Below, one piece after another: positions 3,004 through 35,309 of a stretch of 64,000 nucleotides of DNA. Position 1 is the first letter of the stretch, and every line of letters begins with the position of its first letter. The notes beneath the pieces were generated by a model, which was given only the letters and a program-made list of their open reading frames with translations, made no database searches and was not told where the DNA came from. Source of the DNA: Entomortierella parvispora E1425 (lineage: Eukaryota; Fungi; Mortierellomycota). The DNA is taken from NCBI GenBank assembly GCA_020891255.1, contig BQFW01000007.1:1426001-1490000 (forward strand). Reading direction: 5' to 3'. The position numbers and the translations under genes were made by a program.

Positions 3004-9378
<6,375 letters not shown>

Positions 9379-9860: not shown

Positions 9861-11735
9861 ATGGCGTCCCCTGAGCCGCTCCATCCACTTTGCATGGCTG
9901 CCGCCCAAGACGGCACTGTCTATGCAGTAGCTTTGGCCTACTGGGACGTTTACAGATATACGGTCAGCCGTGATCCAGATTACCTTGTCGCCCTCAAAGG
10001 CTCAAGCTTTTCCAATCTTGCTGAGGACATGGTGTGGGTGCCTCTTACCGCCACGTCTCGAATGAATACCAACATCATGGCTGATCAGAAATACTATCAT
10101 CTCTGTGCCGTATCGGACGACCAAACACAATTCATCCTTCATACCAAGCCAGCAGACAATTGGGTCTGGGACAGATACCCTCGCACATTCTCGACCCGCA
10201 TTATTCTATCAGGGCCACATAGCAACAACACAGTGAACCCCACAATGATAATGACTGTGGACTGGCCCAACGTTACCGCAAACCAAGTAGTATATCCATG
10301 GGCGATGGCTTCCGTTCAGGACCTAGCATCGGCCAATACCACAGATGATTCGTCCATCTCTTCAACAACAACGCCTCTGTTTGCAGAATGGGTCCGATTT
10401 TCTACCAATTTCCATGGCGCAGATTGCATGCAATCCATCAGCGGTGCCTTCTCGCAATTGCCCCGCCCCGTTTATTTTGTAAGTCGTGACACAATGCTTG
10501 CCAACTCGTACCCTTGGCCGCCTTCAGCACTGATGTTAACCCCCTAGTTTTCAAAGGAAGGGGCGATCGCAGGGGGGCCTGATCTTATCTTTTCCGCTAT
10601 GACTGTCTATGAGAAAACGATCTATGTTCTATTATCTACGCCACAGACGGCCCTCTTGGTGACACCTTTCACGTCCTTCAATTCATCATCACCTACTCCC
10701 TTTCCGCCGTCACTGACAAGCACCCAGAAGATCGTGATCCAAAACATAACGGCTTGCGATTCCCAGTCTACTGCAATGACTGTTCAAGGATCCGTGGCAT
10801 ATATTGTCTGTATTTCCTCAGTAAGATATATACTCCAATGTCCTTTTTGAGAAGACCTTCTCTTACTTGCTCATTCTTGCGTCTAATACAATCCCGACAA
10901 AAAACATATGCTCTTGGCAACACAGCTATATCCCGCACCATGTTTTATCCAAGTGAACATTCTAACAGGATCTATAAGTCAGGTCCGGATTACATTCGCC
11001 AACAAAGCCATTGCTAAAAAGAACTGGATGGATGAAACCATGACCCCTTCTCTTGTAGCTGTTTCGAATCAGTCCTTCATTTATACCGATAGCCTGGAGT
11101 TGCCAAGACTGTACTACAGCATCGATATGAATGGAAACATGGACAACTATACCTTGGGAAACGTTCAATTGTTCTCGAGTAACAATTTGAATCCAGACTG
11201 GTGGAATTCTCCGCTGACTCTTTCTACCGCTTCCTCGGTAATGGTATCTATTTTAACTTTCCTCTTGGCCGTACTCTTGATCTGGGCGTATGAAAAACTC
11301 CTGAAGCGACGAAGGAGTACATGGATTGATGACGCAGATGTCCCTGGGTCCAAGGTGGCGGAGGAAATGGACGACGAAGCTTTCTGGGCCTATCAAAGGG
11401 ATGAGCAAGTGCGAGTTCGGCATCGTGATGTCCAAAAGGAAAGCAGCTCTGGTCGCTCACCCGACCAGAATCCACTAGCACCCCACGCGAATGTCTTTGT
11501 GTCTTCACCATTTGAAACATCGTACACCACAACAGCAGTGGCCAGTTCTCGGGATTTCTTGAGAGAGCGTCACTCTGGCCCTTTGCGAGAGCAGCTTGGG
11601 CTTTCAAACCACCCAAGGCCGAACGTAGTCACTACCATCCCAGATGAGGAGTCTGACGATCTGTCCTCCTTCAGACTTCCTTCAGCACCAGTAGAACCTT
11701 CAGCTCCAGAACTGCCTACCTTGTACCACTGTTGA
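9861..11735 (+). CDS. Uncharacterised single-pass membrane protein, HPRPN family copy 1 (~566 aa)
   Basis: Exons 9861-10478, 10548-10820, 10926-11735, all phase 0. TM SVMVSILTFLLAVLLIWAY followed by KRRR; C-terminal LGLSNHPRPNVVTTIPD; three paralogs in the window. Confidence 0.85.
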
Positions 11736-12122
11736 ATATACCTTCAGGTTTGCTCTCATCGACTTACAAAAAAAAAAAAAAAAAAAAAAACAGGGCTGAA
11801 GTGTTGCAAACTTGCAAGCGCGTCAAGTTCACTGGAGCCCTGTCGGTAACTGCATCGATGTGCATGTACCTGTTTGTTGTCCATGAACCCCTGTCGCCCT
11901 CGTGGGCTGTTCTGTGTCCGTCGGATGTTCCACATCCAAGACTGCAGCCCAAGAGAGCCCGCCACTGCGCCCATATACATCTTCTTCGGGGGAAGAAAAC
12001 ACAGAAAAGTCTCTTACTGACAGATCTCATCCCTCCATCCCTTTATTCATTCACTTCTCATTCACTTCCTTCTCATTCACCTCTTTTCTCTCTCTCTCTC
12101 ATCCCTCCACCCCTGTTCCTGA

Positions 12123-13946
12123 ATGACAACCCCTGAGGCACTCCACCCGCTCTGCATGACTGCTGCCCAAGACGGCACTGTCTATGCAGTGGCTTTGGCC
12201 TACTGGGCAATTTACGACTATACCACCAGCCGTTATCCAGATTACCTTGTCGCCGTCAAAGGCTCAAGCCCCTCCGGTCTTGCTCAGGACATGGTTTGGA
12301 CCCCTCTTACCGCCACGGCTCGAACGAATACCAACATCATGGCTGAAAATCAATATGACCACGTATGTGCAGTATCGGATGACCAGACACAGTTCATCAT
12401 CCATTCCAAAGCCGGAGACAAATGGCCCAGGGACAGATATCCCAGCACCTTCTCGACCCGAGTCATTCTATCAGGGCCACATAGCAACAACACTCTGAAC
12501 CCCACATTATGGACGACCCTAGACCAGCTCGACAATAATGATCTTCAACCAATAGATCCGTGGGTGATGGTTGCTGTCCAGGACCTGGCGTCTGTCAATA
12601 CTACGAATACTACGTCCACCTCATCGACAACATCGAGTCTGTTTGTCGAGTGGGTCCGGCTTTCTACCAATTACAACGGTTTAAATTACATGCAGTCCAT
12701 CCAAGGCTTCTTCTCGCAGCCGCTGTCGTCATTTGCTTTTGTAAGTGTGTGTAATGCCTGTTAACCACCAATCCCACAGTACCTCCAGTACTGACAAAAG
12801 CCCTCTAACAATCATAGGGAGGAAGTTTGGCGGCTGCATCCAGCCTTAGCTTGACCGCCATGGCTGTCCAAGGGAAAATGTTCTATGGCCTGTCCCCTTC
12901 GCCCCAGGTATCCCTCTTGGCAACACCCTTGACGTCCTTCAACTCGTCCTCATCTCCACACTTTCCTGCACAACTGACAATCACCCAAAGCATCGCGATC
13001 CAAAGTACAAGTGGCTGCGGTGCCAAGTCTTCTGCCTTGACTGTTCAAGGATCCGTGGCATATATTGTCTGTATTTCTTTGGTAAGATATATACTCCATG
13101 TCTTTTATAAGGAGACCATTGCCTACTTGCTCTTTCTCGCGTCTAACATGGCCTTGACAACATTCTCATGTCTCAATAATACAGGACTATCCCTCTCCTC
13201 CCCCAACCTTTATGACGGTTAACATTGAGAGCGGGTCTGTAACCCAGTCTCCGATTACGTATGCCAACAAAGCCATTGCTCGCAAGCAATGGAGTTACAA
13301 AGCCATGGCGCCGTCGCTAGTTGCACTTTCGGATAAATCCTTCATTTATAGCGATGGCCTGGAGTTGCCAAGACTGTACTACAGCATCGACATAAATGGG
13401 TACATGGACAACTATACCTTGGGAGACGTTCAATTGTTCTCGAGTAACAATTTGAATCCAAACTGGTGGAATTCTCCGCTGACTCTTTCTACTGCTTCGT
13501 CGGTAATGGTATCTATTTCAACTTTCCTCTTGGCCGTACTCTTGATCTGGGCGCAAGAGAAGTACCTGAGACGACGAAAGCGCACTTGGGTTGATGATGC
13601 AGACATCCCTGGTTCCAAGGTGGCCGAGGAGATGGATGAAGAGGCTTTCCGGGCCTATCAACGGGAAGAGCAAGAGCGAGTTCAACGCCATGTCGAAAAC
13701 CAAGCCAGCTTGGGTCGTTCACCCGACCGTGATGTGTACTCACCCTACGCGGATGTAACTGTGTCTTCGCAATTCGAAACATCCTATACGCCGTCGGCGT
13801 CCACTTCTCGAGATGCCTTGCGAGAATCCCACTCGGATCCTCTGGGACTTGGGCCGCTCGGGTTCTCAAGCCACCCCAGACCGAATGTAGTAACCACTAT
13901 CCCCGACGAGGAGTCCAATGATCAGGCCACTACCAGGCTTCCTTAA
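12123..13946 (+). CDS. HPRPN family copy 2 (~547 aa), tandem duplicate of copy 1
   Basis: Exons 12123-12740 (618 nt, same length as copy 1), 12818-13081, 13185-13946; same TM and LGFSSHPRPNVVTTIPD motif. Confidence 0.85.
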
Positions 13947-14453
13947 GCATCATTAGAATAGTGCGTCTCACCACCGTCAAATATACCATTGCATGAAACA
14001 GCCATCCCTTCGCTTTTGTTCTATCGCCGACGATGCAACGAACCTCAAGAATTCTACCACAGGATTGCCGACAAATATGTCACGAAGTTCGCTGTTAGAA
14101 CCACTTGAAAATAAGGCAGAGTGAAAGTCGAACTTTTTGCTTTTCTGCGTGCTCTTCAGTGAGCGCTCGGTTCCTTCCTTCACGACAGCCCAAAACAACA
14201 GCCGTTTGGATACTCTTTGACATGAGTTCTTTGCTCGAGTAAGGTTCTGTGTAACAAAAAGTCGCGACTCAGAAAAGGGGGTTTTTTTCTGTTCTTCTCG
14301 CGGGTCTCGACGACTCATTTCACATTGCACCCACCCCCACCTTTCCATTCAACGAGTCTCTCCCATAATCGGCCCTTATGGATGGCCGCGGCCCCCAATA
14401 TTGTTATTATTGCTACTACTACAGTAGTAGTAGTAGTAGTCCTCCACCAAGCT

Positions 14454-14481
14454 GGTCGGTCGGTCGGTCGGTCGGTCGGTC
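14454..14481. repeat. (GGTC)7 microsatellite
   Basis: Seen directly; abuts the GCGACCA repeat array. Confidence 0.9.
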
Positions 14482-14490
14482 GTTTGTGTT

Positions 14491-14696
14491 CGCTACTAAA
14501 AAAAGGAGAGCAATCAAATTTGCGACCATGTTTGCGACCATGTTTGCGACCATGTTTGCGACCAAGTTTCCTTTCTAGGTTTGCGACCAGCTTTCAATGC
14601 CCATTTAAGGAATAACGACCAACTTCATTTCAAACATCAAAGACTTGGTCGCGAAAACTTGGTCGCAATACTTGGTCGCTCTCTCTACTCGTAGCC
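14491..14696. mobile_element. Degenerate CACTA/EnSpm-like terminal remnant or MITE: array of direct and inverted GCGACCA motifs
   Basis: Five TTTGCGACCA copies (14519, 14531, 14543, 14555, 14580) face three ACTTGGTCGC copies (14643, 14657, 14670). The left end CGCTACTAAAAAAA resembles CACTA termini. No clean TSD. Confidence 0.45.
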
Positions 14697-15475
14697 TCAC
14701 TTGCCAATAGCTCCGCGAATATCAATGCCAGGCCAGGGTGAGGAGAGACGGCGGCATTCGATAGACCTTGTCGTTGTTCTTGCAGTTGTGGAGCTCTCTT
14801 CCCTCCGCCATGGTGTTGCTTTTAAGGGTCGTTCTCGTGTTTCAGGAAGCAAAGAAAATGGGGTGACGATGTCAGCGCCTCTGATTGCAAGGTCGCAGAG
14901 GTGGGCAACGAGGTCACTTGGCAAGAGTATCAGCGAGAGCTGCGACAGGTATTGTTTGAGCATCACATGCAGGGTATCCAGCTGGTCGACCTTCGTGGAC
15001 AAGATCAGATCTCGTTTCAAGTCATCTTAGACGTAATGTTGTCACAGTCGTCTCGATAAAGCCTCTGGCGAAAACTAGATTGAGCCATAATTCTTCAGTC
15101 CCTTTGTCCCTGCAACCTCTGCTTTCCATTGCCATTGTACCATATGAATCACAAACACGTTGAATCTTGGGGGTACAGTGGTTGCTGACAAGGGCTGGTT
15201 TCTGAAGATCGCAAAAATGAAGACGCGATGTACTTAAGGGTGTGCGTGATCCAACGCGCTTCTTTTTTTTCTTTTTTTCGTCCAGGGGCCCCCTAATGTC
15301 TGACTGATTCACCCTTTCATCTTCCTATTTATTGACATCCTTCACCCGACTCTGCTTTTGAAGACAGTTTTGCAGAACCATAGAATCAAGAAACTTGCAA
15401 ACAACATTCAGGAAACACCACACGTCCATTTTACGGCGATTATTTATTTAATTCCAACATTTAAATCTAATCACC

Positions 15476-18400
15476 ATGTCGCAAACTCCTTCGTCTGCAA
15501 GAGCGGATCCAGCTCAGGACAGCGACAAAACATCAACAGGCGATCACAATTCCCAGGCAGTCAATGACCCAAACTCAACATTACCCGACTCTGCGGTCGA
15601 CCCTGCCTCAATGACCAGCCCAACGTCGACTCGGCCACCTCCATTACACTCTGCAGCGAGCGTGCCCTTGTCAATAGTACCCACCACAGCGTCACGGAAT
15701 AATCCCCCGCCTCTGCTGAGCCCAACCTTCAGACCTGGATCGCCTGTGAACCGGAAGCGCTCAGAGGTCAAGGATGACGATATCATCTCCAGCAACGAGT
15801 ACTTTTTCCAGAACGCAAGCTCGTTTTACAGCTTGAGCGGGTCAAGTGGCACCAGGAGCGGCGGAAGTGGGGGAGGCAGCGGGAGCGGTAGCAACAGCTC
15901 CCCTTTCCCGCCTCTCAAGAAATCAAAGACCTCCCCGCCGCTTTCGCATTCCAATCTCACCGCATACAGATCCTCGAAGGAAGCGCAGGATCCTCTCTCG
16001 CCACAAACGTCGCCCATCATGGAACCATTTGAGGCATTTGAGGCATTTGATGCTATATCGACAGAAACCATCTCCACCATCAACCTGGACGCGACAGAAG
16101 CGAAAACGACGACCCCGCCTTCACTTAGCAGGAGAAGTTCAGGCAGCACTCATAAGGCAGGAACACCCCCGCTCTTACGGGCTAGGACTATGGATGAAAT
16201 CAGCCCTAGGACCCTGGATTCCTCCGTTATCGATAGCTTGTCCAAAGCGAGTACGGACGCTATTGGGAACTTGACTCTCGGTGGTGGAAGTGGACGTGCC
16301 ATCTTGCCTGAGAGAGCTATGGGAGTGATCACTAGCCGGCCCAGCAGTCGTCAGGGAAGTCCAACCGTGACAATGACCAGTCGGGAATCGACACCCATGT
16401 ACACCGATGATTTTTCAGCCCATGACAGCCCCCACCCACTCAGTCGTGTCAACAACAACAAGAGGGAACACTCTGTGACACCAAGCGAGGACACTCTGAG
16501 CTCAGAGGAAGGCTTTCGAAGGGGAAACATTCTCGACACACTCGAGGATTACAATGAGGAAGCCGATCCGGATTACGAACCTGCAGCCGACACCACAGTG
16601 GACGAAGAAGGCGACACGAGGCAGTCCTCGGTGGATCCAGACGATGAGGACAGTTTTGGAGAAATTGACGAGAACAATATTCACAATGCTCAGTTTGAAG
16701 TGGGCTTTAGTGATGACGATGGCGCCTTCTATGGTATTTTGGACGACGATGATGAGACAGTCGATCCTGCAGATATTTTCGTGGACACGGACCCTGAATG
16801 CAAGGATCGATTCACAGAGGAAGAGATTGCGGCACTGGATGAGGAAGCCAGGACAGAAGGTACGGTCGTGGATAGTTTTTTTCGGTGACATATATCTCGA
16901 TATGACGACCTGCTGACGTTTTCTGGTGGTTTACTCCTCTAATCCGATTTTTTTTATTTTTTATTCTATATTTTTCGTTTAGGCATTGCGCATATGATCC
17001 AGAAATACGTGATGACAGATATACACCCAATGAAGAAGTTGCTGCTGATGTTCTTCCCTGATACCGAGATTGTAAGTTGCGGAGCAGACTTCATCGCTAA
17101 AGACGCCGTCGTAGCCCTCCTCGGTCTAACCCTGTGCCATATGATTGATATACGTAGGTCGCTTTCCCCAAGGGCATGTCCAAAATCCAGGTGTTCGAAT
17201 ACCTCTCCAGCAAATGGCAGGAGGACTTGAGCAGACGCAAGCGCTTGGAGCATGTGCACAAACTGGAGCAAGTGATTGAGCTACTGAAGACCTCCAAGAA
17301 GATCATGGTTCTGACGGGTGCAGGAGTGTCTGTCTCTTGCGGCATCCCTGACTTTCGGTCCCCGGATGGTATTTATTCGCGACTCTCTGAATTTCAACTG
17401 CGGGATCCACAGCAGATGTTTGATCTTCGATTTTTCAGGAGGAGACCAGAGATCTTTTATTCGTTTGCAAGGGAGATCTTCCCTAGCAACTTCACGCCCT
17501 CGCCAAGTCATAACTTTATCAAGCTGCTGGAGGAGAAGGGAAAACTCTTGAGAAATTATACCCAAAACATTGACACTCTTGAGCAAAAGGCAGGAATCCA
17601 CAATATTCTGCAATGTCATGGTAAGAATGAGCCCCAGTATCATGCGTCCTGCTGAGGCAAGGAAAATATACTAACAGCAGTACATTGCCCTTTTTTAGGC
17701 TCATTTGCCACAGCGAGTTGTGTCCGCTGTCATCATCAGGTCCCAGGAGATGAGATCAAGGATGCCATTTTCAACCAACAGGTTGCCTATTGTAAGATAT
17801 GCACTGAAGGAGAAAGTGAGCCATCCATTCCTCAGACATCCAGTTTGAAGCTACCGACAGCTTCCAACAGAAACATTAGCAAACCGAGAGTCAGCTCGAG
17901 TTTGTTGGATGATAGTGACAGCAGCAGTTCTTCGGAAGACGAGCTGGATCTGAATCCACCAGCGTTGATGAAACCAGACATTGTCTTTTTTGGAGAACCC
18001 TTACCATCTGGCTTTAATGACCACTTGGAAGATGATCGGCTCGAGGTGGATCTCTTGATTGTGATTGGAAGCAGTCTGAAAGTGGCTCCTGTCAGTAATA
18101 TCATGAGTAAGTGCCGAAATATCTTGTATATTTTCGCGAAGGAATGTACCATCTTGCCGTACTCTTTTCTAACCATCTTTTTGATATTCATTCTAGTTCG
18201 CCTTCCACCAAAAGTTCCGCAAATTTTGATCAACAGGACACCAATCACCCACACGGAATTCGACGTTCAACTTTTGGGCAACTGCGACACCATTGTAGCA
18301 GAGCTCTGTCGCATGGCGGGATGGGAGCTTCATCACGAAAAATTACCCGAGGGAACCTCGAACGTCGCCAACATGGATACCAATACCAATGCGGATGGTG

Positions 18401-19785
18401 CTGGAGTCGGAGGGCGTGCCCATTGGTCCTTGGTGGAACCCAACACGTATCTCTTTGAGGGAGCAATCTTGGGCGATATTGAGTACGAGTCTAGTCAGAA
18501 AAGACAACTGACGAAATCGACCTCTGCGGGCGATGTATTGTCCTCTGGCATCAATAAGGGTCGGAAACGTGGACGGTTTGAAAACAGACGCCTTGGGGGT
18601 GCTGCCAATAGTGGTGGCGACGGCTCAAGCAGTGATGCAGATGATGAAGGAGCTTGGAGCAGTCGGAGGTATGGACGGTCTCGGGAAAGGATGGAGATGG
18701 ATCATATTCAGGCGGAAAGCGATAGTGACGACGACAAGAGTGATACCAGTCAAGCGACGATTACCAAAGGCGATTTCATTACCATTGCAGCTGAGAGTCT
18801 TGGTCCCGGTGGCAGCGGTGCTACAGGAACCTCGTGGAGCCCCTATGGCATCCCTTCGTTCAGAGTGCCGACTCCAACCTTTGGACCCAGCAGTGGACCT
18901 GCGATTGTGCTTTCGTCCTCGGCCCCAACAACTTCCTTTGGATTCGGCATCCCCAAATCTAAACCAAAGGGGACTCGGTCTGGAAACACCTCGGATCATC
19001 AAACCAAGACGACCAAGACGTCTTCTCACTTTCAGACAATCAAGGGCTTTGACATTCCAGTCTCGTCTCCCTCTCGATCTGGTCCACTGACTTTTTCGCC
19101 AGCCCCATCGCAGTCAAAACAGGAAGCTGAACCGGAATCTGCGTCTCAAATCTCGCGTTTCCAATTCTTTGAAAATTCAAACGAGCTTCCTCAAGCTATG
19201 GGCGATCCGGACGAGGACGAGGATGACGACGATCAATTCTATCAGCACATCGAGCTCGAGCTCCAAGAGGATGACGATCAACAAGATGAGCTGTACGATA
19301 CACCAAAGGGTGAAGCGGAGGACCCGCACGAGCCGCAGAGAGCAGAACCCATGAGCGAATCGGACAATGTGTATATGTCAGGACATGGCGAGGATCCTCA
19401 GTCATCCTTCCGTACCGGACAGTCCCTTGCGCTACCTGAAGAAGACATGAGGATGCCATCGCCATCGCCATCACCGCAACAAGAAGACCAAGGAGATTCT
19501 GGCCCAAACAGTGGCGACATTGATGATGAGACTTTTCAAGATGCAGAGGAAGATCTGGATGGAGATACGACTCTCAACTTTAGCTTTGCGAGGTCAGGAC
19601 CTTCGAATTCTTTTGGGCAGCGCGGCAATTCACGGGTGCAAGAGAACCAATCGCTGTCGTACGCTCTATCATCACCCTCTCAGTCGTTCATTGAAGCGTT
19701 TATGAATGAGGATTCTCCTCCGCCTCCGTTTTCCTTGACGCAAAGTCATCAGTACCAGCAGCAAAGTCCTCCCGACCAAGAGTAG
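15476..19785 (+). CDS. SIR2: Class I sirtuin (Sir2/Hst1-like NAD+-dependent deacetylase) with long low-complexity N- and C-terminal extensions
   Basis: Motifs VLTGAGVSVSCGIPDFRS, RNYTQNIDTLE, QCHG|SFATASC, KPDIVFFGE, IGSSLKVAPVS, PQILINR. Introns include 16860-16982 and 18107-18196. Confidence 0.93.
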
Positions 19786-20181
19786 AAATGGCTCAAGGAG
19801 AAATGTAATAATTGTAATATTTATATCCATCTGCAACCGTAGAAGGGCTTGCCAATAAAGGAGATGGCAGAAACGCGTGCTTTTCACTTTGCATAGAGCC
19901 AACAACATGAGGGATTTTTTTTTCAATCCTTTTGGGCGTGGTTTGTGGGGGAGAGGGGATGACTGGCGTGGAGGAGGGTGCAAAGCCCAATTTTTCCTTT
20001 TGAAAAAGGCCCGTGGCAGGGGGGTCACAGGCACACGGAAAAATTGCTCGGGTCAGTTAAGGACCGAAAGGCATGGCAACGTTTTTTTTTATTTTTTTTT
20101 ATTTTAATGAACACGATTTACTATTGTAACAAATAAAGATAAAAGAACAGGTCTAAAGTACAGGGAGATGGTGGAGGATCC

Positions 20182-21699
20182 TCAGTTGGTCTCAATGGTA
20201 GTCTGGACAGTCAAAAAGTCGACTGCCCGGGTATGATTTTGCAATGCAGTTTGCTGTTGTTGCTGCGGCTGTTGTTGTTGTTGTTGGCGAAGGAGGTGGC
20301 GACGAGTGCGGCAAAGGGTCTCTTCCGGTGAAGCCTCGTCCTCCTCGCTTGCTGAGGTCGAGATCACGGACAAGGATGTAGACATGAGGTCATCGTACTC
20401 TGGCAAATCCCTGCAATACTGGGGTGGACTCTGGTCCGAGTCATAAAGAGGCAAAGGGGGCATGGGCTCGCCCTCGGTCAAGAACATGGGTCGATCCACG
20501 CTGGGCTCACACCAATCCAGTCCCTCACATGTCCGGTTATCGCACGAGGGCAAAGTCCTGATCACGATGGGAAAGTCAAAGTTGTGGCTCTCGGTCTTCA
20601 AGAAGAAGCGCTCGTTCCAGATCGAGACCTGGACAGAATAAGTGATCTTGAGCGCACTGGACGATTCGGTAGTCGGAGGGGTGATCTTTGGGATGGGGAG
20701 CACCAGACTGAATTCGCCCTTGGGGATCGATTTTCGCTCGTAATGACAGATCACTTCGTCCTCCTTGTAGGTGGTCTCGTTGATCCTGGCTCGGATATGT
20801 CGGGTGAGCGAGAACTGACAACGGTCAATGGCTGCAGCCGCCGTCAGTTTCACATGGACCTGTCCTCCTGGGGTCAGATCGGGTCGAGAAAGCAAGAGGG
20901 CGGTCCCCATCTTGGGGCAAGACTCCTGGATCGGTCCATGTTCCAGTCCTGGGGCTGAGAGAGGCATAAAGTTGATGGTTTTGGCCTTGGACTGCCATTT
21001 GGAGAGTCCATTGGGGCGTCGGTAGTAGGCTGTCAAGGTGTACTGGTTCTTAAGCCAAGGGTGATCAAACGAAGCTGGCAAGTTCTTGTCCGGCAATTGC
21101 ACCGTGAAAGGAAAGATGTGGTTTCCAGCCGGCAGCACTCCCCATTGGTCCTCTGGCAGGGCCTCCCGGGATCCCCAGAGAGTCATGGCCACACTAAAGA
21201 GTCGTCGCATATGATGATCCAGATGATCCTGCTGTTTTGAGCTAGGGTAGTTGGATTCGCCTCTAAAGACAATCTTGAGGGCTGGCAAGGTCATGGGCTT
21301 GTCCAAATGGAGATAGACGACGCCGTGGATGAGATCGCCGGGGTAAAAGATAGGGGAGGAGCTCTTGCACTCGCCATTGTGGGCAATCTCGATTTTGAAC
21401 AGCTTGGGCATTGGACTGGAAACTACAGCTAACGGGGAGACGGGTCGGTCCTGTGGAGGGTTCGTTGCGGGAGTGAACGAGGACGAAGGCACAGAAGTAG
21501 GGGAAGAGTGCTGAGGATTATCGTCTTGAAGAGAGTGGTTGTTGTTATGGCTAAAGTTGGAACGGATGCTGCTCAGGCTTCTGCGGTGCTGAGGGCCCTG
21601 TTCAGGCAGGGGTTCTGCCATGGAGTGGGTATGTGCGTGGGTGTGGAGTGGCTCCTGGGAAGGAAAGTTGTCAGGTAATGGTATTGATGGGTCAGCCAT
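20182..21699 (-). CDS. Alpha-arrestin-like (ART family) protein, 505 aa, intronless
   Basis: Arrestin-N signatures FYPGDLIHGVVYL...LKIVFRGE...GNHIFPFTVQLP...LPASF...QYTL; C-terminal PPQY and LPEY motifs. Start set at MADPS because the upstream ORF extension is a CT-rich UTR. Confidence 0.85.
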   Translation of the reverse strand: MADPSIPLPDNFPSQEPLHTHAHTHSMAEPLPEQGPQHRRSLSSIRSNFSHNNNHSLQDDNPQHSSPTSVPSSSFTPATNPPQDRPVSPLAVVSSPMPKLFKIEIAHNGECKSSSPIFYPGDLIHGVVYLHLDKPMTLPALKIVFRGESNYPSSKQQDHLDHHMRRLFSVAMTLWGSREALPEDQWGVLPAGNHIFPFTVQLPDKNLPASFDHPWLKNQYTLTAYYRRPNGLSKWQSKAKTINFMPLSAPGLEHGPIQESCPKMGTALLLSRPDLTPGGQVHVKLTAAAAIDRCQFSLTRHIRARINETTYKEDEVICHYERKSIPKGEFSLVLPIPKITPPTTESSSALKITYSVQVSIWNERFFLKTESHNFDFPIVIRTLPSCDNRTCEGLDWCEPSVDRPMFLTEGEPMPPLPLYDSDQSPPQYCRDLPEYDDLMSTSLSVISTSASEEDEASPEETLCRTRRHLLRQQQQQQPQQQQQTALQNHTRAVDFLTVQTTIETN

Positions 21700-24502
21700 G
21701 GTGAGTCTATGCGTGGGGTAAAGAACGGATATTGATGAGGAGAAGTAGAAGAGGGGAGGAGAGACAGAAAAGTACAGCTGAAGAGAGGAAGAAGAAGGAG
21801 AAGAGAAGAAGAAGAGAGTGAAGAGGAAGGAGACGAAGGAGAAGAACAACAGAAGGAATAGAAGGAACAGACGAACCCTGTTCAAACGAATGAATGAAAA
21901 AATTAAAAAAAAATAAAAATCTTTTTTTTTTTTTTTCCTTCACCGCTGCACACCCGCTACCCGCTTGTCACCGCTGGACCACCCGCACGCTTTGTGACAT
22001 CAGAAACAACTCAGACAAACTCAAAAAGGGAACACCGAATCGGTGCGCCCGGTCTGTGTCTCTTTGCTTTCTCTCGCTCTGCTGCTCTCTCTCGCCCTCT
22101 CTTGCTCTCCCATCCCATCGTCATGGGTCGAGTGTTCTGTGGGCTGCATCGGCTTCTTCTCTCCACCCCTCCCTCCTGTCTCTCTCCCCTTGCCCCACCC
22201 CTTGGCTGCAACGTTGCTGCCATGCGCTCGTTGGCTCCATCTTTCTCATTTTGTTCTCGACATGTCTCTCCCGGGAACAAGGTCCTCCGGGCTGCCGTGG
22301 GTACATTTCTTTTTCCTCTTGTTTTCTGTCTCTTTTGCCCAAACCAAAAAATGAGGAGAGAGGGCTCTTCAACTCTTTTTTTTTAATGTTTTGCCGCCCC
22401 ACTTTCACTCCTGTCAAAGTGTTTGCCTTTGTTGTTGTTTATTGTCATGTCATCCAAAAACATGAGAAAGCGCCGATACAACACAGAGCATGGGTACCCC
22501 TATACTCTATATCGTATCCCCCAGAGGTACGTCAACCTTTGACCCTGCCCCCTCTCCTACCATTCGTGGTCGTTGCTCCCATCTCCAATTGATCTCGTTC
22601 TGACCCCTCTCCACTACACACGCCTCTGTCTGGTCTCTCTTCACCGCGACAGGAATTCAAGAGTTTTTTTTTTCTCTCCTCCTCTCTCCTTCTTATATGC
22701 AACGTACTGTTCTTTTCTGCACCTCGAAAGGGAGCAGTAATCCAGCAGCGATAACCAGGCTATCTTTTTTTTTTCTGTTCAAATAGACGCGATAGAAGAA
22801 GGTTGAGGGGTATGATAAGATGGATAGCGATGATCTTTGACGCCAGACGCCCTCTTTTGTTGTTGCCTGATCTTCTATGTACCTTTTCGCCTTTTGGTAC
22901 AAGGGTCACTCTTTTGCAACACCAACATCACAAAATGACCGTGCAGAGTTGCGGAGTGACAATGAAGTCTGGATAATCCCCAAAGGGACAGTGCAGGGGG
23001 GTGGAAACAATCGAGGACATCGATGACAACAACAGCAACAACAAAAACAGCAATTGTAGCAACCACAGAAATTGGTCCTTCTGACCCCATTGTTGATTTT
23101 TGTGGAGAAAGAAGAATGGGGACGAGGTCAACGCGAAGGGATGATGAGAATACCAACGACAACAAGAACAAACAATTGTGGGGAAAATAATATCGACAAA
23201 AAGACAAACAACCAAAGGAATGGTGGTGGACTCGCGCTGAAGCAAAATTCTCTTTTTCTGAAAATGCATGAATGAAAATAATAAATTCTGTTGTGGAATT
23301 GAAAAGGCTGCATTGACCACCGTGCGGCCAAAGAAAATACAAGCGACAGCTGAAATGAGTGTGGGAAGAAAAGACGACTTTGAGAAAAAGTCAAATTGTT
23401 GCGAGCAGGTGGAAATTGGCGACCGAGAAGGCCTTGGACCTTCAAAGATGTAAAACAATAATAATATTGCGGGGAAACACAAGCCCAGAGGCAGAAGAGC
23501 TGGGCGATGGTGAGCAATGGCGACGGTTTCTTGCAGAAAGAGCAGCTTCTTACCTGCGGAGAAGAAAATGTGGAGGTGTTCAGAGGAACTTTTAGGCAGA
23601 CAATACGAGGCAAAGAAGGTTTTGAACAAAGCCTGACCTTCGGATGCCTCGGCCCCGTCTGGTTTGTTGGTCATGAGCATTCATGGCAAATTACCTCCAA
23701 ATTTGGCCAATCAGCGGCGAGGGGGGTGTTGGTGGCAACCATCACATGACCGCAAAGTCCAGAGGCATCAAGCCGTTGGATTTCTCAGAGGTCCGTGAGC
23801 CATTCTTCGACTGTTCTCTCGTCCCTTGCCTCCTTCCATCCTCTTTTTTTTCTTTCTTGCCCATCCCACCCGCCTACTCTACCCACGCATCTCCACGTTT
23901 GATCACCTCGATATCTGTATTCCCGAGTCCCCTGTACCTGACTCCCTTTCTCCCTGCCTCCCTGCCTCCGTGCTCATCCTCCGTTCACCAAAATGCCACA
24001 GCTACTGCTAGCAGTACCGCTAGGGAGAACATGGTTCGGTACACGGTATTGGAAGACACCTTCCCTGATGGATTTGCCCGTTGAACTAGAGGTATATTCA
24101 TACTTCGCACCCCATCCTACTTTTTGGTGGAAAGCAACACTCCTATCCGATACATCATTTTTCGTGCGCTCTCGCGTGCCTTTTTTCACACTCCGAGAAG
24201 GAATGAGGGCTGATGCGACTGTAGATGAAGAAACAGGAGGAATGCAGGAGTTGAAGCATGCAGAAAGAGCTCAAATGGATGGAGAAGACCCATTGTACTT
24301 TGTCATCGTAGACGGCAAGTTGAATTTTTTTTTGGAAGAGGTCTAGACGTCGCTCTGCGCAACAACAAACAGCATATCAACAACATCGGTAAACCGATAA
24401 TCGGATTGTCATCCATCATCTTGACGGCTAAATCACCCAGTCGGTCTTCCCCACTCTTTCCCTGGCGCCAGACAAACCCAAAGCAAGGCGCAGTGCAACC
24501 GA

Positions 24503-26123: not shown

Positions 26124-27182
26124 TTGTGCGATTGTACTTTAGTCATTTGACACCAAATATACCCATTTTCATTATTTGCCAAAGAGTTTGCCGCGAAAAG
26201 AAAAAAAACAAGGAGAAGGACGGAAATGGGAACAGGCACATGCGATCACGAACCCGCAGATATGCATTCCCGGCAAGCAGATGCTTTTTGTTCATTGTGG
26301 CACCATCGTGTTCGTTGAGACAAACAGCTGTCTTTCGAGCACCCCTCGCGAATGTGAATCCAGGTCGCGTGGTGCGGAGCGGTGTGTTTGTGATCTTGAT
26401 GGCTGTTGGGGTTGCCAGCGATATTGCGAAGAGGAAGGGGCACATGTTCCCCTCGAGGTCACATTGTCTGAGAAAAAAACATATTTTCCCTCCATTTCTG
26501 GAGTTGACCTGTGAGGTGGCGCCTGGTTGGCTACCGACATGGACATATCTTGAGATTGAGGACAGGGCAGAGAGCAGAAGCAGTTGGCGGAGTGGCAATG
26601 ATGAGGAGCTGATGGGAACGAACAGGAGAAGCATGGGTGGACAGACGACCTAAGGGAAAGGTTGTGGGATGGAGCAAAACCATAATTCTGACTCGAAATG
26701 GATCGATGCGATAAAAAAATATCTGGTCGCCCTTTGGGCACAGCATGCATGCAAGCAGGCAGGCAGGCAGGCAGGCATGCACATGTGTCAAGCCAGCAAG
26801 CATGACCCTAATTCTGTGGCCTTTGATTCCGGTTGCTGTGCCATACTTGACCTTCAGTCTGTCTGTCTGGCACCAATTGCAGTCAACGACCTTGCTGCCG
26901 CACCGCGATAAGGTCACTATATTTTGGCCTCGTTGTGAGGTCTGTTTCGTGGTTTCACTCTTTCTTTTTTCCCTTCTCTACGTTCTTCACTTTCACTCTC
27001 TTTCTCTTTCTCTTCTCCACTTGTCCCTTCTTCTTTCTCTCCGCTCTCCTTCTCATTCCTCTTGATTCGCTTACTGGTTGCTATTCCTCGAAGCTTAACC
27101 CATCGTCGCATTCGCATTCCCTCTCTTCCTCCTCATTCTTCTTCCTCCCTTCCTTCGCTGCTGTTTGCAATCGCACCTTACC

Positions 27183-30100
27183 ATGGTTCTCCACACCGCA
27201 CTCTTCTGGCTCGCCAACCAGGGAGCCTCTACAGCTTCAACGCTAGTCGATAATGCCGAGTCTCCTCTGAACATCTATTCCAATATCGCAGGCTCACTCT
27301 CGATCCTTTGCTGGTTCATCGTCTTCACTCCGTAAGTTCCTTTTTTTTTTTATTGTTATTATTTTCCTTTTTGTTTTGTTTTGAACCGTCTTCAAAACAA
27401 AAAGAGTGAACTACACCAGAGTAGAAACTCTTGGGATTGTGCATTTCAGATCATGAGGATCTCGAGATGGAATCAATCTGAACCCAATGATCGTTTGATC
27501 AAATCCCTTGTTCTTTGCCACCAAAAAAAAGTGAGGGTGAAAAATTGCTCCTGCTCCAGGAGTGTGCACACACCCCCTAGAACGGACGACGGCATCTTTA
27601 CAAGGAATGAAATACGAGCAAAGGGTGGGGGGAAGTGGTCGGGTTGTGTGTTTTCTCCTTCATTTTTTTTTTTACTTGTGTTGGATCATCAGGGGCCACT
27701 GAACCTGCTTGACACGATAGTGGTCAAGCAGGGCATTGTGGGTTAGACTTGGAACACTGAGGGGTGCAAAGCAGTAGACGGACATTTGGCCCCTGTCGAG
27801 TGGGGGAAGCTGCAAGGGCAAGACTTTTGGCTCTGGGAAGGGTTGATGCAATTGAACAGGTGTTTCCAAGGGTGCACAAAAAGGAGATCGACCCACACAC
27901 ATGAATGAATGGAGCTAGACACGAGATGATACGGGAACGACATCCACGGATGCACAGGACAGGCAGTGGCAAAGGAGATCCCGAACAGCAGGAACTGGAT
28001 CAAGATCAGTCAGTGAACCCACGACTTTTCCTCCTCAGGGAATTCTCTTTCCCTGACGGAAGAGACAGTATGTCACAGCTGCTGCGGGCCAAGTGCAAAG
28101 ACAACGAGCATGGCAAGGGCGACGATGTCATCTGGTGCAGACAGGACAGGACCAAAAAAGACGAACCTTGTTTGGCATTGTACTCACGAGGACTGATGGG
28201 CACCAACAGAAGGCCGCCATCTTCCCTCGCTTTTTGGCTGTCTTCAATACCGAATCAGGCGGGGATTGGGTTCGACGGTGTCGAAAACTGACTTTTTTTT
28301 TTTTTCTTTTTACCTTTCTTTTTCCTTTTGATAATCTGGAAGGGAAGCAGAGCGGGCACAGAGGGATCCCTGGCTATCGTGTGGTGCAGTCACTGCTGGT
28401 CATGGTTGCACAACACACACAGGGGCACATGGGGCGGGCGCCTCCAGGGCCAACGGTCGAGAGCACTTGTGTTGGAAGACCAGAAACTAACTTGCTTTCC
28501 GTTCTGACATGCCTTCTCACCTAGTCAATTTTGGATCAACTACAAGCGTCAGTCTGGAGAGTCCCTGTCATTAGTCTTCCTATATATCTGGCTGGCCGGC
28601 GACATCATGAACCTGGTCGGCGCCATCATGGAAAACCTGTTGCTCACTATGGTACGTGATATATGGGCTGAAAGGGACCCTCGCTCTCTTCTCTGACTGT
28701 GGGAATGGATTTGCATGTACAGTACAAGTGCAGAGCTATCGGCCGGGACTCGAGGGCTGTGATCGAGTCGCCGCGCGCGCTTTCCTTTTCTGTGCCCAGC
28801 TGCCGCTCGTACGACCACACCAAACCACCTCAGCGATCTTGTTGGCTAATCCTTGTCCCTTTGTTGTTCTTGCTTGCGAACCAATAGCGTATTCTGGCCT
28901 GGTACTATACCATTGCCGATGTAAGTTTGTCTCCAACCCCATGACTTTGTGTGAATTCCATGGGATTGAAAAGAGCCTGCGTTACTGACAACACCATGCT
29001 CTTTTTTGAAAACTAGATTGCCCTGATTGCCCAAATCTTCTACTACCGCAGGACGTCTGTCAAGGCTAGCTTTGAGTCCGTCATCACCCACGCAAGCCCC
29101 GAGAGTATCACTCACTCTCCTTCGCCTGCCCATGGCGAGAATGCCCCTCTCATGGCTGGCTCTTCTTCCCACAACTACTCCAGTGTGGCTGCCTCTGAGC
29201 ATGTCCATGAGAATGAGCATGACCGCGTGATTCACAAGGCTGCCATGGTCGCCAACGCTACGGCTGCCGCCTCTGCCCAGCATGATGATCATACTCTTGA
29301 AGGTGCCCTTTCAGGAGATCGTCATCACCTGCGTCGCCCGTCAACTCACTCGACCATGACCTCAGCTTCAGGGCGCTACCGCTCCAAGGTGACTCGTCGT
29401 CGCAAGCTCATTCGCAAGGCCCTTATGATTGTCTTCCCCATTGTCTCAGTGGCGTTCTTGATCTGGGCTTACCAAGATTGGCTCCAATGCACCATCGGTC
29501 ATGGCGAGGACTCTGATGAGGGATCCCGATGTGGACGCGGTGGCGGTCATGGAAAGCTTCCTCCTTCGCCTCGTCCACCCACTGGAGATGAAGACAGTGA
29601 TTTGATGTCGGTCATGATGGGAGGAAAGAAACACAAGAAGCACCAACCCGAGGAGGACAAGACTGGATTCTACTACACTGTTCTACCATTGCTTCTTGGA
29701 TGGGGAAGTGCCGTCCTTTACCTCGGATCGCGTATTCCTCAGATTTACAAGAACTGGAGACTCAAGTCCTGTGAGGGATTGTCGATCATGATGTTCATGT
29801 TTTCGGTGTTTGGCAACATCTTCTATGTCGCCTCGGTCTTTTTGAACTCTATTGATCTTGACTATCTTATCAAGACCATGCCCTGGTGGTTGGGTTCTGG
29901 TGGTACCTTGGTCTTTGACTTTACCGTACGTGACCGCTAGTTTGTGTGTTGGCCATTTTTTTGTTCTATTGATGTTCATCGCAACTGATCCTGGTATTGC
30001 CGCTTTGTTGTTCCCTCCACAGATCTTTTTCCAATTCTATATCTACCGTCACAACCAGCCATTGACTGAGGCTCTCAAGGAGGCAGCAGCAACTGGCGAG

Positions 30101-30241
30101 CTGGATGAGAATGCCTTGTTGGCCACAGCAGATTCGGACGACGACGAGGCAGCCATCTTGCGTGAGGGCGAAGATTCAGATTCATCCTCGACCACTTTGA
30201 GCCAGAACAACAAGACCACAGATGCCACTGCTCGTGTATGA
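27183..30241 (+). CDS. PQ-loop repeat transporter (Ypq/PQLC2-like vacuolar basic amino acid exporter)
   Basis: PQ loop 1 CWFIVFTP|QFWINYKRQSGESLSLVFLYIWLAGD; PQ loop 2 LYLGSRIPQIYKNWRLKSCEGLS. First intron 27332-28524. Confidence 0.9.
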
Positions 30242-30600
30242 AGCATTCCTTGAGTATTGCATCTCTTTTTTTCCCCATGTCGTTCGGTTTCTTTCGTCAC
30301 CCTTGTTTTATTTTGGTTTTCCTTTTTCTTCTGTTCTGTTTGCTGTCTCTTTTTCTTCCTTTTTCAGTTTATATCTACCTGTACCATATGAGAGTCTTTT
30401 GGGAAGAGAACAAAAAAAACGTGAACGTAGTCATCAGAGAGAGTTTATTAGGTTGTTCTTTTCCGCCCTTTTTTTACATCTCTCTTTTACACTCTGACAC
30501 GTTTTGCTATATCCACGTCTCTTCTTTGTTTCCATTGCTGCTCAATAAACCGTATCCGCAATCCGAACAATATATCTCGTGTTGTTACTATGAACTAGCG

Positions 30601-32564
30601 TTACTCCCCGGGTATTGTTGTTACAACATTTGGTCTAGGATGGTTAGAAAGCTGAAGAGACTCTAGCCCTTGTGCAGCAAGGAATGGACTGGAACGATCA
30701 GATAAATCAACGGCATCAATATCGCTAGAGCTCCCCCCGAGACGGTTGCCCCTCATTCTCAGCACTTGTCCTGCGGAATGCGGGGAAGAAGACGGTGAGA
30801 GAATGTCCGGTTCTAGCAGTGCCAGATCCTTTTGTTGAGCGCGCTGGTAGTCATGAAAGTTCACCGCATCCGTGTCGTCTACCACTTTCGAATCCGGAAT
30901 ATCCCTGATGTCCACCCCTCTACGCGTCCATTTTCTCTCTTTTGCTTCCTGAATCCAAATCAAGTACAGCCCCAAAAATAAGGCGGCAAGAGTAACAAAG
31001 ACAGAGGCCACGCTCGACAGCGTCAGGGAGTTGGTCGTCAGCATCCGGTTTTGGTTCTCGCTTGAGAAAAATGGAATGCCATCCACCCACTGAGAGACCA
31101 CTTGACCAGAACCGATGTCAATGAAGTAGAGTAGACTTGGATCATTGCAACTATAGTGGTATATCAGCGTATACTGGTCAAGGAAGCGGAGAGTGGCTTG
31201 AGTATGTTGGAACTGACTTGGCATAGTCAAGTCCACTTTGGACAGGTCCTGCTGGATCGATACTTGGTGCGTCGTATTGGTCAATGTATTAAAAGTGGCC
31301 AAGGTCGCAGTACCAGAGTCCTCCTAGTGACCATTTATTTGTGACAGAAGAAAAAAAAAAGAAAAAAAAGTCAGTAATGCGATTGTCAATTGTAGTCGCA
31401 GTCAGCTCTTCTCTGTCTTCTGGTTCTCTTGCCACCCTTCCCTCCTTCCTCCTTCGTCCTTCCCTTCTCTTAGCGCTACTTACATTACAATAAACATAGA
31501 CGCTAGAGTTATCAACAGTCATTGCTGACCCCAGAGTACAGCTCATATTTGATAGAATATTCCAGGCTCCTATGGAGTTTTGTGCTGGCTGTTCAAAGGT
31601 GGTGTTATACCTCAGCGGTATCGAGTAGAGTACCTGCTGGTTCATGTTCGAATTGTACAAGCCGTAGAGTGTTTGGTTGTAAATGGCAAAGATTTCAAAA
31701 TAGACAGTGCTGTTCTCTCCCGGAAAAAAGCTCTGTAGCGGCGAGAATTTGATCGAGGGGTGGGTCATGAATAAAAAAAGGAAGAATGGGCGGATGGAAG
31801 GATGGATGAAAGAGGAATGTAGATAGACAGTTCCAACAGAGTTAGTCTAGTACCAAGACAGATAGAGAGTGATAGCAGCAGATACACCTCCTCCAAAGAC
31901 TTACAACGCGAGGGCCATCCGTTGCTTGGCTCGGGAGTGACCCATTGACGGTCTGGGCATACAAGAATGAGGGAGGTAGACTGTCTCCAGTATTCATTTG
32001 TGTAAAGTGGACCCATTCTTTGTTCGGTTGTGGAAGATTGACGATGGTGCTGTTGATGTTGGTGTCATTGATGCTGGGGCTCTCGACCAAATCCTGGACA
32101 GAGACCACGACGTAGGGATCAGAAATAGTTGACCACAATGTCCTGTTCTTCCGCTCGTCCAGGACCATCTGGATTGGCTGAAACCCGTCCTCGTTTTCGT
32201 TCTCGCCCAGGGGTACTTGGATGGAAAAGAGCTGTGCAACGGATTTATAAGCGTAATCCGTGGGGACAACATGAAGGATAAACGTTGCGTAGTCTGGTGA
32301 GATCGCACAGGCGTAGTTGTATCCATTATTGGGGAATATATTGACGGCCATCCTCTCGATTGCAGCCGCTGCAGACCAATCCACACTGTAGATTGAAGTA
32401 GGGTAGTTGGTATACCCTAGGTATTGACCTTGGAGCACAACAAAGAAATCTGGGTTGGGGTCCACCCCGATCTCGGCTTCCCAATAGGCAAAAGTAGCAA
32501 GGTAGATAGTGCCATTGGGTGCTGTTGTCATACACAGCGGTATAATGGGCATAGGATCCGCCAT
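30601..32564 (-). CDS. HPRPN family copy 3 (~543 aa)
   Basis: Exons 32564-31905 (660 nt), 31732-31484, 31323-30601, phase 0. N-terminus MADPMPIIPLCMTTAPNGTIYLATFAYW; TM; ends LQLSNHPRPNVVTTIPGE. Confidence 0.85.
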
Positions 32565-33365
32565 AGATAATATTATGTATTATTAATGAGAACTGAGGAG
32601 GGAAGAAGGAAACAGAAAAGGGAGCAAGGGAGTAAGGGACAAAAGATGGCGGATGTCTGAATGGAAGACAACATGATGTCCATGTGCGCCAATGGTGACA
32701 TGTTGATTTCGTGGAAAACAAGTTGCTTCCGGTGGGCTCACGGCCACAAGAGTGTCTCCGCCCACACTTCTGAAAAAGTATGAATGACTTCCGAATGAGA
32801 ACCCCACTTTGGCGTTGTTGCTGACATAGACTATCTTCCAAGTCCAACAGCAGCATCCTATGGAGAAACACAAAGACGACTTGTGAGTCGTTCCTTCATT
32901 GTCAAATCATCACCATCATGGCTCTCTGTCATTTTAAATCATGGAAATGCCAACAGCAATTGACGCGTCATTTCCAAGTTTCAAGATAAACCGGTTTAAG
33001 ATATACAAGCCTCGACGATCAAGGGAGGGGGTGATACCAATATCCACTCTGTAGGATCGTCCGCAATGGTTGTCACGACGTTCGGTCTAGGGTGACTTGA
33101 GAATTGGGGGAACTCTAACTCTCGTTCAAAAATGGAAAGGGCCTGAGCGATATGATAAATCCACAGCCGGACACTGGCGTTCTCAAACGTGTAGACCTAG
33201 AGTGACCATTGGTCCTACATGCGGTGAGGTGCAAAGAGGAATTGAGCCGCTACGGGGTCCAAATTGTGTCCTCTCTTTCATCTTTGCTATTACACCTTTA
33301 CACAAGTAGCGACATGTTGACACTTTGGCAGATGTTGTTTTTATTCCGGTAGATGCAGATGAGAG

Positions 33366-35309
33366 TTATTCCTCAAGATCATCTGCAATGGTTGTTACGA
33401 TATTTGGTCTCGGATGGCTAGAGAACTGGAGAGAAGCTAAGCTTTGGTCATAAAGGTAGGGACTCGAGACACCAGACCTATCCATAGTGTCGTCATCTCT
33501 CAGTCCACTTGCTCTCAGGAGGGATGTCCTAGAGCCCCAACTGGTCTGTTCTCCAGCAGTCAGCATCTGAGGCAATGATTGTGGTGATTGTGGTGAGGAG
33601 CGTGTGTTGGATTCAGACCCTGTAGAACGATGCTGCTGTGGTTGCTGACGTTCCATCTCCTCCTGGTGAGCGCGTTGATGAGCTTCGAAGGTCACCTCGT
33701 TCGTAGTATCTGCCAATTTGGATCCAGGTATATCATCAAAGTCGATCCAAAGGCGATACCTCCGTTTGTCTCTGACACCCTGACCCCAGATCACGAACAG
33801 GCCCATGATAAGGGCACCCAGGGTGATCAAGATGGACTCCCAAGTCGCCAGGGTGATGGATCTTGCTGTCATATTCCTGTTTGGATTACTGCCAGAGAAC
33901 GTAGGGATCTGGTCGATCATCAGGGATTTCAACTCTCCAGTGTGAGTGTCAATAGAGAAGAGAGATGTAGGCTGCAGCCAGCTGATATGGTAGATCAAGA
34001 GTCCGTCATTCACGATGTGGAGGGAGCTCGTATAATCTCCGCCAACCCTGTGAAGAGTCCAATCTACCTTGGATATATCCACCTTCACTGGGATCTTCGT
34101 GGTAATGTTGGTGGAGGTATCGATCCGAACAAGCGTTGTGTCATCATCATATTGTATCTACAAATCCAAAGAAAATCAAGCTGCTTGGTGAGCGTCCATC
34201 GCAGTGATAGACCTTTTCCAGTACAGCTCAGGAGTCTTACCCCAGTGGTGCAGAGAGCATACAAAACGGAATCTTTCACTGCGATTGATGCGTGGAATCC
34301 GCAGTAGGATTGGAGTTCAGAGGGAAGGGACCATGTCCGAGTGTTCTCTAAAGGCGCCTCCAACATCTGTGAAGATGAAGTGTTGTACCTCAATGTAGTC
34401 GAGGATATTGTGCTCTCGTTGTTGTGATACAAGCCGTACAGTGTGTTCCCTTGGAATGCAAAGGAGCTTAGGTGCAGATACCCCTCCGAAGGGTCCGGTC
34501 TCTATAGAGGCGAAAGAATGAAGGATCGAACAAATGCGTGAAGTGAGGAGATGGAGGGAATAGTTATGGATGGTTAGATTGTTGCCGAAGTAGGCACCTT
34601 GTCCAAGATCCATGTCATCTTTTGTCGATTCACAAATAGATATACCAGAAGATATCCATCCATTAGCTGACTTGGAAAGGACGCCTTGAGCGACTGAGAG
34701 TAGGAAAAAGAAATATCGCGGGCGAGGGTGGGTTGCGAGATATGAATCCAATCTCCATAGGGCTGATGACCCGGCTCTGATCCAACGTTGATGTGTGCAC
34801 TGGGGTCCGCCGCCACAGCCTGGACAGAGATCATGGTCCATGGCGGATGATAGACACTTTTCTCATTCATATCAATCGAGTTTCGAAAAAAGCCCTTTTG
34901 TAGATCGTCCAGTGCGAGTTGAATCTGTCTATAACCATTATCTGTGCCATTGACCTCGTCCAAAAGAACTTGAATGGAAAAAAGCTGAGGGACATCAATG
35001 TTTGAAGTAAACAAAGGTTTAACATGAACCATGAACTTCTTTTGGTCCGGGGTTACCGCGCAGTTGTAAATGTAGGTAGGCTTCATTGGGAGAGAGGTTG
35101 ACGTATCCTCGTTTGGCCAGACCCTTGGACTCCCACTTGAGATCCTGAAGCTGCCCGCCATTGGGAACCGAGCCTTTGACGACGACAAAGTAATCTGGAT
35201 CGGGACTGACCCCGATGTCGTTTTCCCAGTAAGCAAGTGCGGCAGCGTAGAGAGTACCATCATCGGCTGCAATCAAACACAGGGGTTCCAAAGGCTTCGG
35301 ATCTGACAT
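33366..35309 (-). pseudogene. HPRPN family copy 4, frameshifted by a 4-bp tandem duplication in exon 1
   Basis: Exons 35309-34646 (664 nt = 660+4), 34501-34241, 34157-33366. Minus-strand CTACCTAC at 35079-35072 shifts the frame to a stop at 35019; removing 4 nt restores NEAYIYNCAVTPD. Confidence 0.8.

Follow-up and report, generated by a model that had tools for sequence, protein, structure and literature searches.

Four genes of Entomortierella parvispora E1425, three intact and one frameshifted, from a Mortierellaceae-restricted family of predicted propeller membrane proteins

What kind of protein is encoded by four homologous, receptor-like genes that stand as two tandem pairs, one on either strand of a single fungal contig, and is recognition of other organisms their task? 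The genes lie in a 64,000-nucleotide stretch of Entomortierella parvispora E1425 (contig BQFW01000007.1 of assembly GCA_020891255.1, positions 1,426,001 to 1,490,000 of the forward strand; hereafter the window, whose first letter is position 1), both strands of which were read with splice models. The original prediction, made from the letters alone, had described an unannotated four-member family in which a variable, glycosylated, propeller-like ectodomain is joined to a constant signalling tail, and had proposed that it serves the recognition of bacteria, host or self/non-self. The anatomy and the evolutionary reading given there largely hold, whereas the contrast between head and tail and the immune-type role are unsupported. 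The best explanation, which we hold with roughly even confidence, is that the window carries three intact members and one freshly frameshifted member of a family of propeller membrane proteins found only in Mortierellaceae, with the architecture and mechanism proposed below. A receptor or adhesion role is put forward more tentatively, as a possibility somewhat short of even.

The product of each gene is very probably a protein of about 550 amino acids (aa) in which a six-bladed beta-propeller of about 395 aa at the N-terminus is followed by a single membrane helix and then by a tail of 115-150 aa that is disordered. The AlphaFold2 model of copy 3, built on a 21-row family alignment, has a predicted local distance difference test score (pLDDT) of 72 and a predicted template modelling score (pTM) of 0.69; it contains 25 strands at residues 9-382, which form six four-stranded blades and a closing strand, followed by a long helix (408-439), a short helix (456-471) and a disordered remainder. 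The model of a distant paralogue, P0012 (pLDDT 70), has the same layout; a six-bladed propeller with four-stranded blades is a feature of the models, and their structure neighbours are all six-bladed propellers. The agreement of two models and of their neighbours bears out the beta-propeller head that had been suspected. The membrane helix of copy 1 is encoded at 11226..11285 on the plus strand (aa 398-417), and the basic cluster KLLKRRR comes after it; the corresponding segments occupy aa 397-415 in copy 2, aa 409-427 in copy 3 and aa 417-435 in copy 4, and among family members the Kyte-Doolittle hydropathy of the segment (KD19) is 1.96-2.88. Conservation was assessed by aligning nine members over their full length, namely the four copies of the window, P0012, one more from a second locus in E. 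parvispora and three from Gryganskiella, and one hydrophobic segment followed by a lysine/arginine (K/R) cluster, as first seen in the four copies, is confirmed in all nine.

In sequence, this architecture corresponds to no named family. No Pfam family reached threshold when the exons were scanned at E-values up to 1 and seven full-length members at E-values up to 10, the hits obtained being chance ones, and the family profile matched no solved structure among the PDB sequences; a characterised housekeeping family, which would have overturned the first reading, was thus not encountered. Kelch repeat profiles gave no match in the same scans of exons and full-length members, and a protein language model gave Kelch only as a hint, at 0.78-0.80, below the 0.9 threshold of the tool. 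Nor was there a match to the Ldl_recept_b repeat of LDL-receptor YWTD propellers, to the sialidase/neuraminidase family profile or, on exons or full-length members, to the Fungal_lectin profile of Pfam. A profile search of other fungi had been proposed as a check; the profile of the four exon-3 translations, run against 1.84 billion representative proteins, returned 19 hits, the top three being the window's own genes (GJJ72874, GJJ72880 and GJJ72881) and every named one coming from Mortierellaceae. As far as its sequences can be recognized, the family is restricted to Mortierellaceae. Word-based protein searches with copy 1 exon 1, full-length copy 3 and the family alignment found only the query and one fragment, and a literature search turned up the genome announcement and nothing on this family.

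The gene structures are closely alike. Copy 1 (EMPS_05232) lies at 9861..11735 on the plus strand, with exons 9861-10478, 10548-10820 and 10926-11735 in a homology-based model of 566 aa, and is followed on the same strand by copy 2 at 12123..13946 (exons 12123-12740, 12818-13081 and 13185-13946; 547 aa). The second pair is on the minus strand, where copy 3 (EMPS_05238) occupies 30601..32564 (exons 32564-31905, 31732-31484 and 31323-30601; 543 aa) and copy 4 (EMPS_05239) occupies 33366..35309 (exons 35309-34646, 34501-34241 and 34157-33366), the first exon of copy 4 being out of frame. All eight introns run from GT to AG, are in phase 0 and fall at equivalent alignment positions, and the same three-exon, phase-0 structure is present in P0012 and two further copies. 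The plan of three exons with phase-0 introns at equivalent positions therefore stands for all four copies, with the reservation that exon 1 of copy 4, at 664 nucleotides (nt), is frameshifted. The shift arises from a 4-bp tandem duplication at 35073..35080, which reads CCTACCTA on the minus strand (35080-35073), and a stop follows codon 96, downstream of the frameshift. A second strain (run X3, about 94% identical) is without four letters exactly at this duplication; among the X3 indels listed, this absence would give an exon 1 of 660 nt, in frame. Searching the 64-kb window by tblastn with the four proteins revealed no fifth full copy, only a tail relic of a further copy, 40 codons long (...FPQFSSHPRPNVVTTIADDPTEW), at 33047-33167 on the minus strand between copy 4 and copy 3.

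RNA bears directly on copy 4. Run X2, labelled 'DNA?' but drawn from the genome's own sample, is RNA, as one contig ends in poly(A) and adapter and spliced contigs are present. Over copy 4 lies a 1769-nt contig of depth 100 from which precisely 34158-34240 and 34502-34645 are missing; this copy is hence transcribed, and its splicing is that of the model. This contig shows zero differences from the genome, so that the additional bases of exon 1 belong to the strain itself and are not a Nanopore artefact. The RNA of copy 3 is weak, with one unspliced contig at depth 7.7; in E1425 the intact copy 3 is thus barely expressed, whereas the frameshifted copy 4 is well expressed. The RNA was taken from endobacterium-cured mycelium grown axenically on plain medium (PMC8759367).

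The four genes had been regarded as unannotated. All of them are already GenBank genes, entered as hypothetical proteins of 522, 547, 543 and 556 aa: GJJ72874 (EMPS_05232), an unnamed 547-aa neighbour, GJJ72880 (EMPS_05238) and GJJ72881 (EMPS_05239). They are, in consequence, annotated but without function. Our model of copy 3 equals GJJ72880.1 residue for residue, and that of copy 2 has the length of the called gene. For copy 1, GJJ72874 has Met12 as its start and, through a later acceptor, lacks 33 aa of exon 2; since all other copies have a blade strand at the aligned positions, the GenBank model looks mispredicted, barring RNA that shows alternative splicing. The entry for copy 4 begins at a downstream ATG within the shifted frame. 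A run of about 22 A on the plus strand, at 11769-11790, lies 35 nt past the stop codon of copy 1.

Conservation across the nine members is concentrated in a few residues. Four Cys columns are invariant throughout, as had been noted for the four copies, and these are the sole Cys in five of the nine proteins. The N-terminal motif described earlier, M-x-x-P-x-P-[LI]-x-P-L-C...[DN]-G-T-x-Y...Y-W, is present, and the N-terminus of every member conforms to M-x(1-4)-P-[LI]-x-P-[LF]-C. One N-glycosylation sequon in exon 2, [FY]-N-x-[ST], is likewise invariant (9/9). Two short motifs mark the tail. The first, W-[IV]-D-x-x-D-[IV]-P-G-S-K-[VL]-A-E-E, is encoded at 11322..11366 on the plus strand in copy 1, at 13587-13631 in copy 2, at 30874-30918 in copy 3 and at 33705-33749 in copy 4; the second, L-x-[LF]-S-[SN]-H-P-R-P-N-[VI]-V-T-T-I, is encoded at 11595..11639 (plus strand), 13857-13901, 30613-30657 and 33387-33431, respectively. 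Their cores, W-x-D-x-x-D-I-P-G-S-K and S-x-H-P-R-P-N-V-V-T-T-I, are kept in all nine members, which are otherwise 24-30% identical.

Motifs of the type F-S-S-H-P-R-P-N-V-V-T-T-I are also carried, sometimes doubled, by other Mortierella membrane proteins. The form F-S-S-H-P-R-P-N-[IV]-V occurs in one or two copies in Mortierella sp. (P0018 and P0020) and in M. hygrophila (P0019). P0018 and P0020 were considered as distant full-length members and dropped, since hhalign of the family against P0020 aligns the C-terminal motif 2 only. The distribution of motif 2 would fit a short docking or sorting signal that is reused on several proteins. Among the Gryganskiella sequences, the annotated protein P0007 (KAG0048172.1, 1355 aa) unites two tandem genes of the family, the second of them beginning at residue 645 with the N-terminal motif of the family.

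How has the family evolved? Copies 1 and 2, about 75% identical in nucleotides overall, share a tract at 11080..11290 (plus strand; last blade and membrane helix) with 95-97% nucleotide identity, in which the synonymous divergence (dS) is 0.12-0.16 as against 0.5-0.9 elsewhere. A second tract of high identity (90-92%), at 10756..10845 on the plus strand, takes in the end of exon 2 and extends into intron 2, and selection at the protein level therefore does not explain it. Both tracts are best read as gene conversion between copies 1 and 2. The family extends beyond the four members first counted, as the same genome holds three more on BQFW01000013.1 (1648548-1670250; locus coordinates 7333-9029, 10001-11703 and 19281-21127), in addition to the tail relic; the first of the three is apparently part-merged into a neighbouring gene model with a CFA20 domain. 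In Gryganskiella cystojenkinii a SIR2 gene is flanked by two family copies, and in the window copies 1 and 2 adjoin a SIR2 gene (15476-19785, plus strand); the presence of SIR2 beside family genes in both genera indicates that the locus is older than their split. The tree comprises two clades, with copies 1 and 2 as sisters, copy 4 closer to a metagenome sequence than to copy 3, and the Gryganskiella copies as lineage-specific duplicates. On a metagenome contig (L007) the orthologue of copy 3 is syntenic, with the same PQ-loop gene adjacent and the upstream tail relic kept, and is decayed, with three 1-nt frame breaks seen in three assemblies. The relic on that contig (L007:124-237) is about 74% identical in amino acids to that of the window and lies about 480 nt upstream of copy 3 in both, whereas the DNA around it is only about 50% identical between the two; the relic may be old, or it may still be constrained. 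Taken together, the conversion tracts, the frameshift in copy 4, the tail relic, the decayed copy 3 orthologue and the lineage-specific duplications support well the birth-and-death evolution with conversion that had been proposed.

On which side of the membrane does the propeller lie? In every one of the nine members, 3-8 lysines and arginines stand among the 15 residues that follow the helix, as against 0-2 on the side before it, and by the positive-inside rule the cluster C-terminal to the helix places the tail in the cytosol. The propeller is probably exoplasmic, at the cell surface or in a lumen, with the tail cytoplasmic. The invariant Cys and the invariant sequon are further signs of an exoplasmic head, and the Cys pattern would fit an oxidizing compartment; the overall density of sequons is near chance. 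The many sequons stressed by the original prediction were confirmed in that copy 3 has 11 and one site is invariant, whereas the total barely exceeds what composition gives (64 seen and 47 expected in a shuffle control of the nine members). As the count is near the shuffle expectation, sequon numbers were rejected as evidence of topology and only the invariant site was retained. An exoplasmic propeller may place the proteins at the cell surface.

A number of observations weigh against this explanation. The excess of sequons is small, as just noted, and some tails carry sequons too. No signal peptide was found in any of the nine members by hydrophobicity windows over the first 30 residues, a search made without a dedicated predictor: the best 10-residue hydropathy is 0.8-1.7, and the best 8-residue windows (1.2-2.1) are inside the first propeller strand. 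The initiating Met stands only 3-10 residues ahead of that strand, which is modelled with high confidence, and copies 1-3 have in-frame stops just upstream of the ATG. It would be unusual for an N-terminal domain of 400 aa to cross a membrane when no signal peptide precedes it. RNA supports copies 3 and 4 only, in one axenic condition, the RNA having been viewed at window positions 30400-35700. Finally, a single copy can evidently be lost, as the frameshifted copy 4 and the decayed orthologue of copy 3 show.

The alternative that survives best, which we nevertheless consider unlikely, is a layout like that of Sec12, with the propeller cytosolic as part of a scaffold anchored in an organelle or plasma membrane and the C-terminal 115-150 aa luminal or extracellular. 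Such an arrangement would place the K/R cluster, which is C-terminal to the helix in nine of nine members and thereby points to a cytosolic tail, on the wrong side, and would leave a head with four invariant Cys and an invariant N-x-S/T in the cytosol. The tail moreover is acidic and basic, disordered and motif-bearing, and in this resembles cytoplasmic tails, and the structure match to Sec12 is no better than that to dozens of unrelated propellers.

Granted an exoplasmic propeller, is it a rapidly diversifying one? The original prediction rested on a conserved tail joined to a much more divergent ectodomain. Head and tail are in fact equally divergent, with amino acid identities of 65 and 66%, respectively, between copies 1 and 2, 37 and 41% between copies 3 and 4, and 28 and 34% between copies 1 and 3; between copy 3 and its L007 orthologue the head is 46-61% identical (exon pieces) and the tail 58%. 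The most divergent part is the middle of the tail, which at 12-20% identity between pairs falls below the head, and high conservation is confined to the two short motifs. The tail is, to judge from these alignments, a variable linker with two constrained short motifs and not a constant module. The ratio of non-synonymous to synonymous substitution (dN/dS) between copies 1 and 2 is 0.43 for the head, 0.22 for the whole tail and 0.055 for motif 2; dS is saturated in every other pair, for which no head ratio is therefore given. At this resolution the head ratio of copies 1 and 2 gives no sign of diversifying selection, and the proposed comparison by domain reveals no excess variability of the ectodomain.

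These values bear on the view first taken, that the proteins are innate recognition or allorecognition receptors whose head has been diversified by selection toward bacteria, host or non-self, which we regard as distinctly improbable. Tandem paralogues with divergent heads, evolving by birth and death, would suit such receptors, the host fungus does carry endobacteria (PMC8759367), and the six-bladed fungal lectins AAL and AofleA are among the best structure matches. Against this, the head shows neither an elevated dN/dS nor more divergence than the tail, a genome holds only some seven copies, the Pfam scans disclosed no lectin family signature, and copy 4 is expressed in axenic, cured mycelium and hence without bacteria (PMC8759367). 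The cluster is, furthermore, syntenic across genera and set among housekeeping genes. Its neighbours are ordinary: a protein kinase gene beside a gene with a tRNA anticodon-binding domain, SIR2, arrestin-domain, PQ-loop, SPT23/MGA2 and ATP-citrate lyase genes. Three of these, SIR2, an arrestin-domain gene (20185-21885, minus strand) and a PQ-loop gene (29152-29937, plus strand), lie between the two pairs, and nothing about the locus points to a compartment that is specialised or subtelomeric. Recognition of bacteria, host or self/non-self is thus unsupported.

Least probable of all is a decaying, redundant lineage-specific family without a present specific role, whose conservation would stem from recent duplication and conversion; the frameshift in copy 4, the three frame breaks of the copy 3 orthologue on L007, the tail relic, the near silence of copy 3 and the conversion tracts speak for it, but paralogues saturated at synonymous sites have frames that are still open and retain the sequon, the two tail motifs and all four Cys, dN/dS is 0.06-0.45, and the family persists at two loci and in two genera or more.

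The favoured explanation, a family of Mortierellaceae propeller membrane proteins with an exoplasmic head, suggests the following mechanism. The propeller would be stabilised by two disulfides formed from the four invariant Cys, would bear at least one conserved N-glycan, and would bind a ligand or wall component. On the cytosolic side, the juxtamembrane W-x-D-x-x-D-I-P-G-S-K and the C-terminal S-x-H-P-R-P-N-V-V-T-T-I may recruit conserved partners for signalling or sorting. The family itself would change by local tandem duplication, conversion between neighbours and loss of copies. A bolder proposal, and a rather improbable one in our estimation, is that Mortierellaceae have a surface-receptor system of their own, in which propeller receptors free of a signal peptide share one lineage-specific cytosolic pathway through the C-terminal docking motif F-S-S-H-P-R-P-N-V-V-T-T-I.

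Mortierellaceae, which rank with the most common fungi of the soil, harbour endobacteria and live in association with plants; to our knowledge, almost nothing is known of how they sense their surroundings. The genes described here form a compact, clade-restricted, receptor-shaped set that has a well-defined fold prediction and no Pfam domain, and the two sharply conserved tail motifs are possible handles for finding cytosolic partners. A 400-aa propeller that is free of a signal peptide and probably exoplasmic is a testable oddity of membrane-protein biogenesis, and were the propeller cytosolic instead, the proteins would be a new membrane-anchored scaffold. The gain is moderate either way, as the architecture is familiar.

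How, then, does the family compare with known systems? The fungal fucose lectins of Aleuria aurantia (AAL) and Arthrobotrys (AofleA) share 8-10% sequence identity with it, and no Pfam Fungal_lectin match links the two; they are soluble and, unlike the family, lack a membrane helix and tail, and as structure matches they are no better than viral attachment heads, Kelch, NHL and sialidases. Paramyxovirus attachment heads and sialidases have the opposite orientation (type II, in which the anchor precedes the propeller), and at 5-9% identity the resemblance is one of fold only. Sec12, a guanine-nucleotide exchange factor of the endoplasmic reticulum membrane, has a cytosolic, seven-bladed-like propeller and no sequence similarity to the family, whose charge distribution, Cys pattern and invariant sequon point the opposite way. 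Pro-neuregulin-1 and the yeast proteins Opy2 and Fus1 each have an exoplasmic N-terminal domain without a cleaved signal peptide. They share the topology proposed here in that the head is outside, a signal peptide is absent and the helix is followed by basic residues, but their N-terminal domains come nowhere near the size of a folded 400-aa propeller and there is no homology. Set beside these systems, the family is a real, small and clade-restricted one with a familiar receptor-like plan, and its one odd feature is the missing signal peptide.

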